A stretch of DNA of 63,752 nucleotides, the filler included, from Choristocarpus tenellus KU-1152 (Eukaryota > Protista > Phaeophyceae), in NCBI GenBank assembly GCA_964200185.2. It is 11 parts of 11 records of this genome, joined end to end, with 100 filler letters (N's around TTAATTAATTAA, not from the genome) between each part and the next. Parts side by side here need not be neighbours in the genome. Positions count along the whole stretch, not along the records: positions 29,462 to 38,413 come from CAXNAD020004170.1; 10 more parts are not named here. One strand, 5' to 3'. Made by a program: the position numbers and the translations under genes. Each line of letters begins with the position of its first letter. The stretch's first letter is position 1. The notes beneath the pieces were generated by a model. The model was given only the letters and a program-made list of their open reading frames with translations, made no database searches and was not told where the DNA came from. This document shows positions 28,701-38,413 of the stretch, one piece after another.

Positions 28701-30281
28701 TTCCAACAGTTAATACTAGAGCCTGCACCTAAGGTTTAGCGAAGATTACCTTTACGTAACCCTAACCTGATACAACAGCATCACTCTGCTTGCCTAACAA
28801 ATGTCTAGCAAAATTTCTACCAACAGCACAAACTTTCTTTAAATATATAGATTTAGGTCATCATCCAGATAAGTTGACTCCAGTCCAAGGAACAATCGAC
28901 AATGTAGACACCAGCGTACCCTAACTCTAACCCTAACCCTTTATCAACTTCCAAAAACATAGCTTCACTTTCATGATGTGGTAGGTAAAAGGTAAAAAAG
29001 ATAACAGGGCATGACAAAAAAAACATATCATTGTGAGGGTTGTGAATAAGGCAAAAGGGAGACATAATAAAATAAGAAATGGTATATTTCATTACGTAAC
29101 TAAAAAGGCATTCAACATTTCTAACAAACATTCCACTGACTGGAGAACTAACCTCAAGCATCATCTTCAGGCGATGATTGAGAGTAGATATCCCACCACG
29201 TACCCATCTGCATAGAACCTGTCACAAGATAATAAAATTGAAGCAAAAATACGAAAAATATGTCACTTCATCGATGCGATGATAGCAACGGAATGCATCA
29301 GTACAAAAGTGGTGGTGGTACAAAATAAACAAAGTAAGCTAAATCAAAAAGTCATTTTACANNNNNNNNNNNNNNNNNNNNNNNNNNNNNNNNNNNNNNN
29401 NNNNNTTAATTAATTAANNNNNNNNNNNNNNNNNNNNNNNNNNNNNNNNNNNNNNNNNNNNGGGACATTGGCGCAAAGCAAATTGCTTTTTGAGAAGATG
29501 CTCTGTTCTTCGTGTGGGTCCTTGTTGCAGGAGTTCACAGATTATATGTGTTTCACCGTAACCCTAGCCTTTCACCTGAATGGAGGGGAGTTGCACAACT
29601 TGGAAGGCGTGTATGTTGTGGTCAGTACCTTGATTGCTATCGCGGTTGGTTGCAACTGTGGTGATTGCTGTAGATGTATTTTCAGGGGTAGGATGAGGGT
29701 TCTTCTCTCAGATCGCAAGAAGCATAGACAGTTGAAGGGACACTCACTGGAAGGTGGATCTTAGCGTCTGTGAACATCAAATGATTTTTTTTTTTAATGC
29801 TTGCTTTCCTTGTGTGAGCTAGGTGAATGGGATTAGGGTTGTGCATCTGGGGGGCTGATGCTTGATAAATGGCAATGACTATTCTCGCCACCCTGTAAAA
29901 TGCGGACTGTCAATCCTTAACATTGATGATGACTCATTGGCAATTTTAATTCAAGAGGGAGGTGATTTGCTTCTGAAATGCACATCCGATTTGTGATGTG
30001 CAATTCCCTGCACTTAGTTCGTCCAATGTGAACTCCACCACTCCAGCGTACAGTAATGGACTTCTTTCTCACGACTCCCCGAGTAATTGGCTATTTTTAT
30101 TTTTGTGCACCAATCCTGCATCACATCACATGTGTAAATAGTGTCCGCTGCCCTTGAGGAGAGGTAGATGATCAGTGAGGGAAATTTCTTGTCTTCTTTT
30201 AGCCATCGCCTTTGTGGATGCATCCACGATTCCAGGTGATCTTTCAGTCTGGTGCCAATGTGTGGTATATGCTGCCCTCCA

Positions 30282-30499
30282 AACAGCCGATTTCAAAAAT
30301 TGAGGATGGAGCTTTTTTCATTGAGGATGATGGGCTTGACCCAAAATTGACTGGGGATAAAGTGTCGATATGTTTTGTTTTATTAATTGTCATTATTTAC
30401 AAAAATATATATATCGACACTTTATCCCAGTCAATTTTGGGTCAAGCCCATCATCCTCAATGAAAAAAGCTCCATCCTCAATTTTTGAAATCGGCTGTT
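30282..30499. mobile_element. Complete palindromic MITE family E, ~90-bp TIRs, 4-bp TSD TCCA
   Basis: AACAGCCGATTTCAAAAATTGAGGATGG...GTGTCGATAT and its near-perfect reverse complement around a ~40-nt AT-rich loop; TCCA at 30278-30281 and 30500-30503. Confidence 0.92.
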
Positions 30500-31249
30500 T
30501 CCAGAATATGGAGTATTTGACTCGAAAGAAATGCTCTGTAGCTCATCTTCGGCTCATACGTACGATGAGGTTTATTCATTATTATTCTTGTGTCAATCAG
30601 TGTCTTAGCACCAGTCTTCCCGCCTCGATTATGCAGTAAACGAGACCACAAGATTACGTTGTCAGTGACATCATTATTCCTACGGGTTTGTGTGATGTAG
30701 ACTATCTGAACGTACAGACACCATATCACCATTGCTGTCATTTGATCCAGTAGTAGTTCTAATGTAATGTTGACTCTTCTTTGTCCAAGCTTGTGTGACT
30801 GCTAGGGTTCGTTGCATCTGGTTGGTTTCTGTGGCTTGGTCTTTTGTCATTCTATCATCCTACACACACACAATGTGTTGTATGTTCAATGTATAGATGT
30901 ATAGAAGGGTGCCATTGTCAGTCATCACCTACCTGCCATTTGTCTAGTTCGACCCCAAGTTCCAAGAAAAATCTTGATTCAACCTTCATACAGGCACATG
31001 GGTACAACCTGTCTTCTGCCCTCACACTCATATAAAATGCATGTATATTATGCAGCCTCTGTTGTGGGGCTGCAGGAAAGGCTGTATTTTTTTTATCAAA
31101 GATCGGGCAAAAGGGAGGCATTGAGAGGACAAGATAGTAGCTACCTCTTCCTATCTCCTGGAAGGACATGCGTCATGTAATAGAGAGGTTGCTTGGATGT
31201 AATATTTTCATTAATGACTGATGAACAACAATATATTAATCACTAACAA

Positions 31250-31409
31250 GGGTCTACACTAGGAGGGTGTCCATTTGGTCCAAAATCAGGAAAAGTGCAT
31301 TTTCATTATCCATCCGACGTACGCAACCAAATCACACAAAATTGCGACATGAAAAAATTGACCCCAAATGGACAGCCGCCACCCCCCACCAGATACTTTA
31401 CTTTGACCC
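31250..31409 (+). mobile_element. MITE body type A lacking left TIR
   Basis: GGTCTACAC..GGGTGTCCATTTGG...CCAGATACTTTACTTTGACCC. Confidence 0.88.
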
Positions 31410-31701
31410 AACAGTAAGAGTTGCTGCTTCTATTGTTGCGGCCATGTGTGCTTTTTTTGTTATTGGCTGTCCCAGTGTCTAAGAACACCAACTATATGGA
31501 AACGGTTTTCTGCCCTCCTTGAACAGTCAGTCCCCTTCTCCCAATGCATAGTCTGCACATCATGTGCTTGAAAGTAAATTTATGCATTGTGGTTGCCTTC
31601 CGTGATTGTGCGCAGTACTGATGCTTGAATAAGTAGCTCTAGATCTGTAGGTCACAATCAGTCAAGATAATTCCCTGTAATAGCATCATGACGTAGAAGT
31701 T

Positions 31702-31735
<34 letters not shown>

Positions 31736-31764
31736 CAGTAGTAGTAGTAGTAGTAGTAATAGTA
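31702..31764. repeat. (GTA)n microsatellite
   Basis: Directly visible, about 20 units. Confidence 0.95.
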
Positions 31765-32853
31765 AAACTACAGATCTAAGTATGGATTATTAACAACCAA
31801 GCTGCTTTCGTTGTTGGCAGTTTGATTTGCAGTGTCGATATTGTTATTGTGAATCAACTTTTTGATGTAGGTAGAACAAAAATATCAATACATCAATTTA
31901 TATTGTCCTCAGTTCCACCAGTTGGAATTTACGCCTACAATATGTGGCGATGAGCACAACGAAATACAAGGAACGAAGAAAACTACAGAGAGGATAAGGG
32001 GCATTAGCGAGGTCGAATTTTGGTTAGAAGTAGTTCTCTTTTCCCATTAACATGATGCAACAATTATTTCCTGCTTGTCATATCTGAAACAGGCGCTTAA
32101 CCCACGACATTTAACGAAAAGGCTGCACATTTTTAAAAAGGATTACCTTTTCATATACCCACTCCATTTTGTGGTCACACAATACAACTGGCTATCTACA
32201 GCTATTTAGTAGCCACTATTATGCTACTCCTCCTTGACTGTCTGCCATATATATCAACCCTCATGCGGTCAGGTAGAGGTTGTATTTCCTTCTGTGCTGA
32301 AATCGGCATTTTGTTCAAGTGTACATGGATGGTGATGACGTCCTCACTTGCTGTTTCTTGAAGGCTAAGGAGCTTCTCCACGATGGCATTTGACATCATA
32401 ATCCTCAAGCCTATTACTATTGATCAAACAGCACCAGTCATATTGTCCCTCTCCTGAGACATCTGCGAAACCTCAGTAGGCAATGCTCCAGTAGTTAATA
32501 TTTCAGTTTAAAGCAAAGGGCAACACTTTTAGTGAGTTTTAGACGCGAGGAAGGACTTATCAGAAAGCAGAAGGCGAAATTATGGGATTGTTAGTAGGCG
32601 TAACAATAGGCCTTGGAATATACTTTTCTAGGTACTCTAACACACTAATTTTTTCTTAGTACAACAGATTGTCACGCTCACAAAAGAATATCAAGATCAT
32701 GTTTATTGAGGTGTTATTTGCTACAGTGAGGATAAGTACACTCACTAAAAAAAAATCAAAGTATCCTAAAGGGGGGTAGACTTCGACTGATTTGACATTT
32801 TTCAGGGCCTATAAATTTGATGCCCGACTCTCCATTCTCATTGCCCAAATCCA

Positions 32854-33021
32854 AAAGAATATAAAAGTAAAGCTCCAATATTTACAAAATTTGGTATTGA
32901 AGATCAATTAATAAAACTATACCAGCCAATAGTTCACTTACCTTCTGGTGGGTATATTGTCATAAACCCAACTGAAGCACTTATTTCTATTGATGTCAAT
33001 TCTGGCAAAGCAACTGGTGAG
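32854..33021 (+). pseudogene. rne: Internal fragment of bacterial RNase E/G, Rickettsiaceae-like
   Basis: 56 uninterrupted codons KEYKSKAPIFTKFGIEDQLIKLYQPIVHLPSGGYIVINPTEALISIDVNSGKATGE with the Rne/Rng signature LxSGGxIVIxxTEALxxIDVNSG; AT-rich; missed by the ORF track because it has no start codon. Confidence 0.88.
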
Positions 33022-33211
33022 CTGGAAAGCTAGGATATCCTCCAAATCCAACTATTATTGAAGGCTTTATCTTTAAAAATAAGATAATAGTTTTCAAACA
33101 CGATATAACTAATTGATAAACAGATTTTATTTTATTAAATAGACGAGACATTTTGATATGTAGGTTTGCAATATGAGGTATAATCGGCATCTCTTTAGTG
33201 ATATATTTTTT
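33020..33211 (-). pseudogene. murG: Internal fragment of bacterial MurG, Rickettsiaceae-like
   Basis: KKYITKEMPIIPHIANLHIKMSRLFNKIKSVYQLVISCLKTIILFLKIKPSIIVGFGGYPSFPA; KPxhhhGFGGYxSxP is the second MurG G-loop; lacks the N-terminal GGTGGH and downstream HEQN. Confidence 0.85.
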
Positions 33212-34176
33212 CCCATCAGAGGTCTGTGATAGCAGAAAAAAAGAACATGCTGATGGATGTTTTGTCATTGCATTGAAGATTTAGGAACGGAAAACGAAAA
33301 TCACAAAAGAATCACTAAGACCCTTCACAACAAAAGTCACCCCTTTAGGATACGTTGAATCAAAAGTTGCCTATATTTCCTTGGGATAGTTGTACTGACG
33401 AAATGGGTGTCAGTACATCGTAAGAAGTCGTTTTCGCCTCTCGGATTGTATCTGCTACCTATCAGATTGTATCGACCACCGTATATGGAAGGCCTGTCCG
33501 TTTTGACCCGCGTTAGGGTTGGTTTTGCTCGACGGATTGCTGGCATTGATATGCCCAACAAGTCTTCACGAGGAACCAGATGGTGAGCACCCCCCCACCT
33601 CTGATTCGTCCTGTGGTATGATACCATTTTTTTTTGTATACATCGTCACGGTTGGTAGTGTATTTTATATCCAGATGTGCTTGTTGTAAGTATTTTTTTG
33701 AACGATGAGTTGAAGATGTTTGAACTACTGGACCTTTTCCACTGGATCTAATTGTACTGTCTCTGTTCGCGCCTTGGTATTTGCGCGTGTTGGGCTTTTA
33801 GTACTCCCACCCCTCGTCGTTTCATCTTCCCTTCTCTCATGTGCCGGACCTGGGTCGATGTTGCCAACCCGACCTTGGTCCCGCGTTTTTGTGGTGTGTC
33901 AACAGATACGATACTGCTATTACATAGCAGGGTTCGTAGTAGAGTACAATCCATTGTGTTACGTTACCTCGAATCGGATCGTCGAAGCCAGATTTCTGTG
34001 GAAGAGGTCGGGCATCGATGAGGTTCGAACCCTCAATGACCATGCATAAATAACCATCTTATCAACTACGTTTTAACATAAAACTAATTCCAATCATACT
34101 CTACATTACCAAATTAGGCAGAAACATCAACTACTAACCAATCCTATCACCTCGTCCAACACTGAATTGTCTAGCC

Positions 34177-37100
34177 ATGATGTCGTCGTCGGAGAAGTGG
34201 AAGAGCTGCGACATTGCAGCTATTAGGAAAGAGATTGAAGAGTTGCGGTTGGCCCAGAAGGCCCAAGAAGAAACTGAGACTAGGCTTGTGGAAGAGTTGA
34301 AGTCTCGCTGTGAACGCCAGATCAATCTCGAGGTACAGTCCAAAGTCCTTGGCACCTCTGACGTAGATAAAAATAGTCCTGGAGTGTGATAGTACCTGCA
34401 TTTGCTTACCTGCTGAATGATTTGGTCTGCTCAAGCTCATCTCGGTACCGAACCGGTGCTGAGATGCCGTTCTCTTTCAAGAACTTGAACCAAATACTTC
34501 AAACAGGTTCAGCTTGACGAGGCACAAGCACGCGCAGATCGGCTTCAGCGTGAGAAGGCAGATGACGAAGCCCTGTCAGGCGAGCTCGCCGCTATCATGG
34601 AGGGAGTTGGAATAACAGGTGAGCCGAATGACGTAGCAAGGGTTATTGGAGACGATGCTACGTCCAGCATTCAAGTTGGGGTCGATGCTGGGAGGAGTCT
34701 CGTTCAGAGTATACCGAGGAGTGGATACGCAGGAAACACTGAGGTCAGAGGAGTGGAAGGGAAAATACTGAGTGGAGATCGAAATGCGATGGACACGGTC
34801 TCGCTCTCATCCATGACTGCCCCAGATGGTGCAAGTCAGAGGGGTCTGATGGACGAGCGAAACAGACAGATGCATAACGACTCGATGGAGGCTGCTGCAA
34901 AGAAGCATGCAAAGTCGGCTTCTCCTAGAGAGGGATCATTGAGGGCTAGGGTGGTTGAGCTGGAGCTTGCCAGAAGGGACGCTTTGGACGCGTTGAAGGC
35001 TAAGACGGACGAGTCCCTTTGCCACCAAGTTCAGGTAGCTGTCTTCAGAGTGTTACATGCTTGTCACCCACCAAACCTGTCCGTTGCCATCTTATCTCTT
35101 ACAGTAGGTGTCTCTTTCTCAATGTTCAATCCTTGTACTCGCAGAAAGGGTTTGAGTAAAAGAAGAAATGACCGATTCATAGTTTCACAAGGCCCGGACC
35201 TCACGTTCACACAAGAATTGAAATCATGGTAGAACTGGGTTGACAATGTCAGCTTCGAAAGGCATGGGTTGTGTTTGACTTGTTATCCCGCCACCATAAC
35301 CCTGAATTTTACACTTTTGGCACAGTTCGATGCTGACGACTCATTGCTGACCTAAAATGATACCTCCCTCCCAAGGTGGAGCAACTGAAGAACGTGATTG
35401 ACGCTCTCAGTCACACAACAGAAGACGTGGACGGCGATGTCTGTGAACTCCAAGAAAGATCTACGCGAAACAGCAATGGAGAGGCAAGTAGCCGTTTATC
35501 GTGATACATGCTTGTGCTTTGTACTCACATCACATTCTCGAGACCCTCACAAAATCATGTAATTCTTGACCCTTGGGCTAGTCTCCACTTGTATGTTCAG
35601 ACACCGTTGGATCTGCTGCAAATGGAACAAAGAACCTTTGAAACGATCATGTCTAGAATGGTGTCTGTGAAGAATGTTAGGAAAGGCTCCTGGCACAGAA
35701 TTATTTGTCTCTGAAGTGGAGATCTTTTCCCTCCTTCGTGTCTGAGGGTTAGGGTTAGGGTTAGGGTTAGGGTTAGGGTTAGAGCTAGTTACTGTTCAAT
35801 GCTACGTATGGCATGTAGGGGTTTTAGATAAATAAGTCAACACACGTTTTCTTTTTTTCTGAGTGGTTTTTTCTTTTTTTTTTAATATCTCAACTTCGTT
35901 TTTTTTCTGAGTAATTGTTTTTGCCGGTGATATGGAAGGTTGTGTTCACACAGAGCTCTGATATTATAGTAAATATATTGTGAAATTAGCATGCTTGTTG
36001 TTGCTGGTAGTTAGGGTTAGGCCATGTACTATGTGTCACATACTATGTGTCACATACTATGTGTCACATACTATGTATCATGTACTATGTGTCACGTACT
36101 ATGTGTCATGTACTATGTGTCATGTACTATGTGTTGCAAGGCGCTTCTTCAGGTGGAGGTAGGAGAGGGCTGTATGTGAGCTCTACCTACACTGTCCATG
36201 TGAGTAACAATAATATGATACTGACTCATTGATGACATTGCATGGAAAACAGGATCATCATGTATCAATTGCACACTCAGAGGGTTTTGTAGGGGACAAG
36301 CGTGTCTCCACTAGCTACTCCGCTGTTTGTGAGACCCCTGATGTAGACCCAACAGCCATGCTTCTTCTTCATCGAAAGCCCTGGAGTAAGGAGTTGGGAA
36401 AATACCTCAAGAAGGTAGAAGCCGTCTTCGAGTGGCAAGGTTGGGAGAGGTAAGCTTGTCGAATGCATTCCGGGTTAGGGTTAGGGTTGTTGATTGAACT
36501 GAGCGTTAGGGTTAGGGTTAGGTTTACAGAGACAGACTTTCAAGATGTAGGCCTCTCATTTGGTTACGTCCTCAACACACTGTGGGGTACTTAGGGTTAG
36601 GGTTGGGGTTAGGGTTACAGTGACAGACTTTCAAGACGTAGGCCTCTCATTTGGTTACGTCCTCAACACACTGTGGGGTACTTAGGGTTAGGGTTAGGGT
36701 AATTTTTGTGCCGTGTGTTTGATGTATATATATATATTATTTTATTGAGACTAACGTAGTTTAGGGTAAGGTATCTGGTTAGAGTTAGGGTTAGGGTTTG
36801 GCACAATTGCTACTGCCTTAGTTTAAGGAGTTAGGGTTAGGGTTAGGGTTGTGTAAGGATTGATCGGTTTAAGGGTTAGGGTTAGGGTTAGGGTTAGGGT
36901 TAGAAGAGTAGATTCTCTCCTGAATAGTCTAGGGTAGACCCCTATGTTCCCCCTTTGATAGTATGTAGTTCTAGCCCTAACCCTAAGCTCCCCGTTGCTA
37001 TATTGTACATAGTATGCAGGCGGTTTTTTGTCACACTTCATTTTATACACGCATTTGATACACTCATTTGTCACACACGTTTGATACATTCATTTGATAC

Positions 37101-38249
37101 ACGCATTTGATACACTCATTTGATACACTCATTTGATACACTCATTTGATACATTCATTTGATACACTCATTTGATACACTCATTTGATACACTCATTTG
37201 ATACACTCATTTGATACACTCATTTGATACACTCATTTGATACACGCATTTGATACACTCATTTGATACACTCATTTGATACATTCATTTGATACACTCA
37301 TTTGATACACTCATTTGATACATTCATTTGGTACACTCATTTGATACACTCATTTGATACACTCATTTGATACATTCATTTGATACACTCATTTGGTACA
37401 CTCATTTGATACACTCTTTTGACTTGAGCGAGTTAAGATAAAAGTAAACATGTTTTGTCATCATCCCAGTCTTAATACAGCAATTACACATTTTGCCAAC
37501 CTCTCTTTATCGAACCCTAACCCTAACCCTAACCAAACTCTCCACATGAACTTATTGTGTCGGTCCAGATACTTTTATTTTTATTACTACAAATATTTTT
37601 TATTTGCAAATATTCATCTTTATATTATCATTATCATTATCATTATTGTCCCTCCAAAAATCAACCTCACCTCAACTGAAGACCCCCCCACACACACACG
37701 CAATCACCATGGCCCTATACCCCCCCCTTGACACTTGCCTTGCTTATACCTCCTAAATCCAAACCCTAACCCTGTAACCCTAACCCTAACCCTAACCCTA
37801 ACCTCCTCTCCCGCAAGGTGCAAAAACACTAACCTTAAACCCCAACACTAACCCTGACCCTGTACCCCTAACCCTAACACTAACCTAGACCCTGCAACCC
37901 TAACCCTAACCTCCTCTCCCGCAAGGTGCAGAAACACTAACCTTAAACCCTAATCCCAACCCCAACCCTAACCCTAACCCTAACCCTAACCCGTCAGAAG
38001 TCGAGGGTGGACTGCAGACCCACGTAGCCTTCCACCAGAGCTTCGGGATCTTCCCGAGGCATTCAAGTCTTCCTTTGGGACACAAACGCCTTCTTGTTCT
38101 GTGGCCACTCCTGCGGCAAAGGGGACCAGGGAGGGAAACGTGGGTGTGGGCGGCCGACTGGGTATGGTCAAAGGCCGGATAGGGGGTATGGTGACAGGTC
38201 TGGTGGGCGTAGCTCCGCAGTCATTGCTGACTAACCAAGAGATGACCAG
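34177..38249 (+). CDS. Coiled-coil protein with possible DysF-like region; exons 34177-34332, 34507-35034, 35376-~35483, (36141-36158?), 36281-36449, 37998-38249; 3' incomplete
   Basis: Splice signals and frame continuity at exons 1-3 and across the 36450-37997 intron (VEAVFEWQGWER/SRGWTADP); phase between exon 3 and 36281 unresolved; DysF call is motif resemblance only. Confidence 0.65.
35745..35782 (+). repeat. Interstitial telomeric (TTAGGG)n in an intron
   Basis: About 6 perfect units. Confidence 0.95.
36024..36133. repeat. 14-bp minisatellite TACTATGTGTCA(C/T)(A/G)
   Basis: About 8 units visible. Confidence 0.92.
36471..36903 (+). repeat. Clusters of (TTAGGG)n at the intron 5' end, including a ~90-bp tandem duplication
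   Basis: GGGTTA tracts flanking ACAG.GACAGACTTTCAAGA.GTAGGCCTCTCATTTGG...GGGGTACTTAGGG twice. Confidence 0.92.
37052..37416. repeat. 13-bp minisatellite CATTTGATACACT
   Basis: More than 25 near-perfect units. Confidence 0.97.
37513..37992 (-). repeat. Clusters of (CCCTAA)n at the intron 3' end, including a ~108-bp duplication
   Basis: CCCTAA tracts run to within 6 nt of the CAG acceptor; CTCCTCTCCCGCAAGGTGCA.AAACACTAACCTTAAACCC twice. Confidence 0.92.
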
Positions 38250-38261
38250 GTTAGTGGAAGT

Positions 38262-38413
38262 AAAGGAAAGGAAAGGAAAGGAAAGGAAAGGAAAGGAAAG
38301 GAAAGGAAAGGAAAGGAAAGGAAAGGAAAGGAAAGGAAAGGAAAGGAAAGGAAAGGAAAGGAAAGGAAAGGAAAGGAAAGGAAAGGAAAGGAAAGGAAAG
38401 GAAAGGAAAGGAA
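38262..38413. repeat. (GGAAA)n microsatellite
   Basis: About 30 perfect units up to the contig end. Confidence 0.98.

Follow-up and report, generated by a model that had tools for sequence, protein, structure and literature searches.

A probable recent insertion of Rickettsiaceae gene fragments between short inverted repeats in the nuclear genome of Choristocarpus tenellus

Fragments of organelle genomes enter nuclear DNA as filler that is captured by end joining at double-strand breaks (NUMT- and NUPT-type insertions), and this ligation of filler at breaks, established for organelle DNA, is also assumed for nuclear insertions of Wolbachia. Among the Rickettsiaceae, a transfer is described from Volvox carteri, whose nuclear genome carries about 9 kb of Rickettsiaceae DNA (PMC4324946). 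Non-transposon sequence between transposon ends is the hallmark of Pack-TIR elements, and in animals, those present as a single copy form when breaks inside transposons are filled in, without any transposition (Tan et al., 2021; PMC8277862). Such elements are recognized by i) two terminal repeats from the same annotated TIR transposon, each matching the consensus terminus over 10 bp or more, and ii) an internal non-transposon sequence of 100–5000 bp with an unambiguous parental copy of at least 90% identity (PMC8277862). Here, we compare these systems with a locus of Choristocarpus tenellus KU-1152 in which two bacterial gene fragments lie between short inverted repeats. Our data are most readily understood as a recent, one-off and immobile insertion of bacterial DNA by break repair, possibly inside an old small TIR element, and we regard this reading as probable.

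The window, meaning the whole stretch of DNA that was analysed, comprises 63,752 nucleotides from 11 joined records of the assembly GCA_964200185.2, and the locus is situated in the piece of about 9 kb at positions 29,462 to 38,413 (CAXNAD020004170.1). The initial annotation had proposed a possible Pack-type capture of symbiont DNA between the two TIRs of a host transposon. The unit is composed of the following features:

32756–32774, plus strand: left terminal inverted repeat, 19 nt, 95% complementary to 33340–33358
32775–32852, no strand: left arm interior, no match in Pfam, in 80 bacterial loci or in the rest of the piece
32853–33020, plus strand: RNase E/G (rne) fragment, 168 bp, frame intact, PF10150 E = 9.6e-18
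33021–33211, minus strand: murG fragment, about 190 bp, frame intact, TIGR01133 E = 1.3e-6, PF03033
33212–33339, no strand: right arm interior, no match in Pfam, in the bacterial loci or in the rest of the piece
33340–33358, minus strand: right terminal inverted repeat, 19 nt, 18/19 partner of 32756–32774

The bacterial nature of the cargo, as initially annotated, was borne out by profile searches, which assign the plus-strand fragment to RNase E/G (PF10150, E = 1e-17; TIGR00757, E = 3e-19) and the minus-strand fragment to murG (TIGR01133, E = 1e-6). The rne fragment covers approximately codons 335–390 of a 686-codon gene (56 of 686 codons), and its translation in the plus frame (32866–33024) reads SKAPIFTKFGIEDQLIKLYQPIVHLPSGGYIVINPTEALISIDVNSGKATGEL. 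In a protein scan of one genome per bacterial species, the best match was JALZUG010000071.1 (“MAG: Rickettsiaceae bacterium g1_MAG_00005”) with 100% protein identity (52/52 amino acids), and the next-best matches were other Rickettsiaceae and Rickettsiales with 79–90%. At the DNA level, 166 of 168 positions (98.8%) are identical between 32853–33020 and positions 2113–2280 of this contig, and both differences are synonymous and affect third codon positions. The contig is a normal bacterial one, with a full 686-codon rne, densely packed ORFs and a GC content of 0.31. Homology breaks off sharply at 32853 and 33020, in the middle of the gene, where the bacterial contigs go on with different sequence. 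A 3381-bp contig from a marine metagenome run (X3) also has two differences over exactly 32853–33020 and other sequence on both sides; it comes from a donor-like lineage living as a bacterium. When the whole 9-kb piece was compared with the 80 bacterial loci by tblastx, the rne fragment was the sole match.

The second fragment represents part of the N-terminal domain of glycosyltransferase family 28 (about residues 44–107, or some 64 of about 355 codons). A minus-strand ORF of 90 codons (32996–33268) includes the murG piece ending ...KPSIIVGFGGYPSFPA. Searched exhaustively with HMMER, 1.84 billion representatives yielded 33 relatives, the best of which, on a Tara Oceans scaffold, shares 60% of the amino acids and is 69% identical at the DNA level. 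According to tblastn with all 33 relatives, homology extends over 33020–33211 and a few of them reach 33238; the fragment measures about 190–215 bp and the whole cargo about 360–385 bp, and the first 25 bp or so of the right arm may be decayed murG. The rne fragment ends at 33020 and murG starts, on the opposite strand, within 1–2 bases of 33021, and no more than two bases at the join are uncertain. Since murG was located within 10 kb of rne in none of 80 alphaproteobacterial loci, the cargo is a mosaic of two unlinked fragments. Both presumably stem from a common donor; from its sequence, the murG half may also derive from a second donor or an older event, as its best relative shares just 60% of the amino acids.

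Contigs from two runs of the same organism and the same study (X1 and X2), built independently and placed at ≥80% likeness, connect this cargo to the host. The first X1 record (4034 bp, depth 21) spans 32300–33800 unbroken with three differences, and the X2 records over the element have a depth of 4–6 and 0–1 differences. Sequence of bacterial origin is joined to host sequence on both sides at host depth, which is the property that characterizes nuclear endosymbiont (nuwt-like) insertions. The rne contig of the bacterium residing in these samples reaches a depth of 2978 (X1) and 1924 (X2) and matches 32854–33011 only, where 23 of 158 positions differ. Misassembly with symbiont reads can be excluded, because the chimera is present at host depth and the abundant bacterium is only 85% identical. 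A real nuclear insertion of Rickettsiaceae DNA is, in our judgement, very likely.

The resident, abundant bacterium is a Rickettsiaceae-like symbiont and not the donor, which is a sister lineage of the resident still present in marine metagenomes. The variant letters of the resident matched none of the species representatives fetched. Its rne is about 85% identical to the insert, and it exceeds the host depth about 140-fold in X1 and 300- to 450-fold in X2. A third bacterium, represented by a 57.9-kb contig with a depth of 176, matches part of rne. A separate murG contig (4005 bp in X1; depth 17 in X1 and 8 in X2) is 80% identical to 33048–33210; its depth is near that of the host and not that of the abundant bacterium, and the contig may represent another nuclear insert or a rare bacterium.

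Concerning the boundaries, an inverted-repeat search delimited a 603-bp unit (32756–33358) that is closed at both ends by a 19-nt inverted repeat with 18 of 19 positions complementary (left TCAAAGTATCCTAAAGGGG, right CCCCTTTAGGATACGTTGA, one mismatch; terminus motif TCAAMGTATCCTAAAGGGG). Taking 300 bp on each side of the cargo and preserving dinucleotide content, an inverted repeat of at least 19 nt with at most one mismatch appeared in 0 of 2000 shuffles, the longest being 17 nt, and the pair is therefore not a product of chance. Imperfect inverted repeats of about 28 bp had originally been reported to bracket the chimera; the 19-nt pair in them is real, but the gapped extension to about 28 nt is not significant alone (p=0.45). 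The arm sizes given at that time (about 100 and 150 bp, and about 250 bp for the element minus the insert) agree with our measurements of 97 bp (32756–32852) and 147 bp (33212–33358) including the repeats, together about 244 bp. The AAAA flanks do not provide a target-site duplication: the left flank carries A9 (AAAAAAAAA) and the right flank reads ATCAAAAG. A search at both repeat flanks yielded no convincing target-site duplication of the kind that marks Pack-TIRs and MITEs; a 3-bp AAT match emerges only with an 18-nt reading of the repeat and is not significant in A-rich sequence.

Inside the repeats, the ORFs of the arms had no match in Pfam. Past the 19 nt, neither arm is an inverted copy of the other, as judged by local alignment against shuffles. 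An impression of long sub-terminal inverted similarity, gained from translations, was discarded, as the local alignment scored 12 against a shuffle mean of 14.8. The GC content is 0.43 in the left arm (32756–32852) and 0.385 in the right arm (33212–33358), compared with 0.315 in the rne fragment, 0.274 in the murG fragment and 0.37 and 0.47 in the flanks, the left arm being nearer to the flanks than to the cargo. Judged by base composition, the arms look like host sequence rather than donor sequence.

The element was found once: at ≥95% likeness, X1 contains one record, with a contig unbroken through the element. The right arm (33218–33370) has a depth of 21, corresponding to a single copy, and the outer 50 bp of the left arm (32759–32809) a depth of 32, a small excess. 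X1 contigs of at least 80% identity covering the right arm likewise have single-copy depth and reveal no further copies. The insertion is very probably single-copy, an estimate drawn from contigs of two small runs of one study, from which the window itself may have been assembled; rare variants can go unseen in contigs. No joints that skip the cargo were accepted in the X1 and X2 contigs. Ten joints considered as empty sites (e.g. 32757 to 33563) were rejected as repeat noise, having short sides of 21–32 nt, being mutually inconsistent and lying in the repeated flanks.

The search for a family gave a similar picture. No terminus with up to three mismatches occurs elsewhere in the 9-kb piece, and the 14-nt core of the terminus is absent from the 80 bacterial loci. 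In JGI metagenomes, the 19-mer has three isolated matches, none with a partner repeat, which is about the number expected by chance (a handful by rough estimate); one of them lies inside a UDP-GlcNAc 2-epimerase-like ORF. Many copies of similar size that share arms and termini, as expected of a MITE family, were absent from the X1 contigs and the 9-kb piece; members with nothing but the terminus in common may exist elsewhere in the genome. Three ORFs, the chimera ORF of 90 aa, one of 96 aa in the right flank and a host ORF of 211 aa, had neither exact nor similar gene calls in the protein collections, and Rfam and tRNA scans detected nothing at the element. The “family terminus” and the “same size as its relatives” of the initial annotation have no counterpart in a piece without a second terminus and in arms that are single-copy on the right and in slight excess on the left. 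Nor did the predicted further loci with the same cargo, which would be expected of a multicopy Pack element, or the predicted empty elements turn up in the contigs (X1 for the cargo, X1 and X2 for empty elements). Of the suggested Pack-type capture and spread, the form holds, i.e. bacterial fragments between terminal inverted repeats as in a Pack-TIR; the spread is not supported, as the cargo is single-copy, which the initial annotation had named as part of the evidence against it, and no empty or differently loaded relatives were found in these contigs. A long hairpin as source of symbiont-matching small RNAs is not indicated either, because the predicted RNA fold is closed by the 19-bp stem alone and contains no long double-stranded region.

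Both flanks of the element consist of host repeats, with a depth of up to 620 at 33473–33676 (about 30 copies) and of 50–112 at 32504–32758, where single-copy sequence has a depth of 21. At 30281–30500, a near-perfect palindrome of 220 bp has arms of 75 nt (30281–30355 and 30426–30500) that are 100% complementary and an inner inverted repeat of 34 nt. This palindrome resembles a foldback or MITE-like element of young age and has termini with no relation to the 19-nt repeat; its matches to several MIR hairpin models from plants, all scoring under the gathering cutoff, reflect the long hairpin only. Telomere-type TTAGGG arrays occupy 35745–37992 in both orientations (GGGTTA runs at 35745–36903, CCCTAA runs at 37491–37992), among which lie a 91-bp repeat, a 14-mer array (36026–36134) and a 13-mer satellite with 30 units (37033–37422); this region is subtelomere-like or interstitial telomeric DNA. 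Microsatellites are found at 38258–38413, up to the end of the piece, (AAGGA)31, and at 31693–31764, (GTA)24.

How the fragments came to lie between the repeats can be explained in several ways. The alternative that the initial annotation had called simpler, a single repair event that placed the insert in an element already present, agrees best with the data, and we consider it somewhat favoured that the insert lies inside a former TIR element. It is unlikely, though worth serious consideration, that the 19-nt repeat is no transposon end at all, but a local feature, left for example by a fragile site that formed hairpins or by the repair itself, in which case the bacterial DNA would sit in ordinary non-coding DNA and the locus would have no Pack-type aspect. 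This would agree with the lack of a target-site duplication, a right arm at single-copy depth and a left arm in slight excess, arms that are unrelated past the 19 nt, and a terminus that is found nowhere else in the 9-kb piece and at chance level in the JGI metagenomes. However, no shuffle reproduced an 18/19 pair within 100–150 bp on each side of the insert, and the same terminus had been claimed for other elements of this genome. A true Pack-type capture followed by transposition, by which a host TIR family spreads symbiont DNA and perhaps feeds small RNAs, has in its favour that Pack elements are recognized by just this arrangement, a cargo enclosed by inverted repeats, and that multicopy Pack-TIRs exist in animals (PMC8277862). 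It is nevertheless very improbable, given a cargo and a chimera present once, no empty element or second locus, a chimera ORF for which the protein collections hold no identical or similar call, and an RNA fold with nothing but the short stem.

Two further readings, taken together, are similarly improbable. One is that the whole 603-bp unit with its repeats comes from the donor, as a degenerate insertion sequence or MITE-like element, and entered the host in one piece; the other is an assembly error that joined symbiont reads to the region. Mobile elements can be abundant in Rickettsiales genomes, and a Rickettsiaceae-like bacterium is extremely abundant in the runs of the host. Yet the arms have a higher GC content (0.43 and 0.385) than the cargo (0.27–0.31) and the donor contig (0.31), the core of the repeat is missing from the 80 bacterial loci, bacterial contigs depart from the window sequence exactly at 32853 and 33020, the spanning contig is at host depth, and the abundant bacterium is only 85% identical. 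A broader scenario, in which a host TIR family repeatedly takes up Rickettsiaceae symbiont DNA at internal breaks and sometimes mobilises the loaded copies, can be given very little credence. If it were true, repeated uptake would amount to a dispersed, datable archive of past infections that possibly feeds small-RNA pathways, and the locus at 32756–33358 would be the first loaded member seen.

Based on the favoured reading, a single repair event, the locus could have formed as follows. Two pieces from unlinked places in a Rickettsiaceae genome, 168 bp of rne and about 190–215 bp of murG, would have been ligated in opposite orientation as filler into a chromosomal double-strand break, the likely route being non-homologous end joining or gap filling as for NUMTs and nuclear Wolbachia insertions. 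The break would have occurred inside a stretch of about 245 bp bounded by the 19-nt repeat, for which a small TIR (MITE-like) element, old and decayed, is the simplest interpretation; as the arms share nothing past the 19 nt, this old MITE is something we infer rather than read directly. The product would be a single copy in the shape of a Pack-TIR made without transposition. Non-contiguous pieces in opposite orientation that abut each other, breakpoints in the middle of genes, a single copy and the lack of a target-site duplication together form the signature of filler DNA. Both frames are still open in DNA of 27–31% GC, which points to a recent insertion. Where functional lateral gene transfer calls for a complete or expressed coding sequence, this locus has partial rne and murG on opposite strands; judged by its sequence, the insert appears to be without function, and fragments too short to encode anything would persist as neutral relics.

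The locus shares with NUMT and NUPT filler the non-contiguous donor fragments, their mixed orientation, the abutting joins and the absence of function, with the difference that the donor is a bacterium and not an organelle. Nuclear Wolbachia transfers of arthropods and nematodes are likewise short, non-functional fragments of an intracellular alphaproteobacterium in nuclear DNA. With Pack-MULEs and multicopy Pack-TIRs, it has in common fused gene fragments between transposon-like ends; those elements, however, were amplified by transposition and have target-site duplications, in contrast to one copy and no clear duplication here. The single-copy Pack-TIRs of animals come closer in having foreign sequence of 100–5000 bp between terminal repeats, a single copy and an internal break (PMC8277862). 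Their cargo is host DNA, mostly from less than 15 kb away on the same chromosome (PMC8277862). In Choristocarpus, it is bacterial and consists of two pieces, the repeats could be assigned to no annotated transposon family, and a target-site duplication is lacking. Measured against the definition of a Pack-TIR, the 18/19 repeat pair is present and neither a family consensus nor a second member was found; the rne half has a parent with 98.8% identity that is bacterial and not from the host, and the murG half has a best relative with 60% amino acid identity. Provided that the repeat pair is what remains of a small, old TIR element, the locus is a gap-filled Pack-TIR with bacterial filler, and should the repeats prove to be transposon ends, it would be a Pack-TIR with bacterial cargo for which our limited literature comparison found no earlier case.

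The comparison with Volvox carteri is the most direct one. In both hosts, the donor lineage differs from the present symbiont, and the host transposon at the Volvox locus (PMC4324946) is matched by a candidate TIR element here. In contrast to the approximately 9 kb in Volvox (PMC4324946), the insert described here has about 360–385 bp, is a mosaic of two unlinked pieces and resides in a marine host. With 98.8% identity to a living lineage, it is a clean case, and a very young one, of a marine eukaryote having received bacterial DNA in its nuclear genome. The insert is a trace of contact with a Rickettsiaceae lineage that differs from the one dominating the runs of the host today. Because these two lineages differ, the locus is a useful marker of symbiont turnover and of break repair with foreign filler, and it represents a further case of Rickettsiaceae DNA in a eukaryotic nucleus, as in Volvox carteri.
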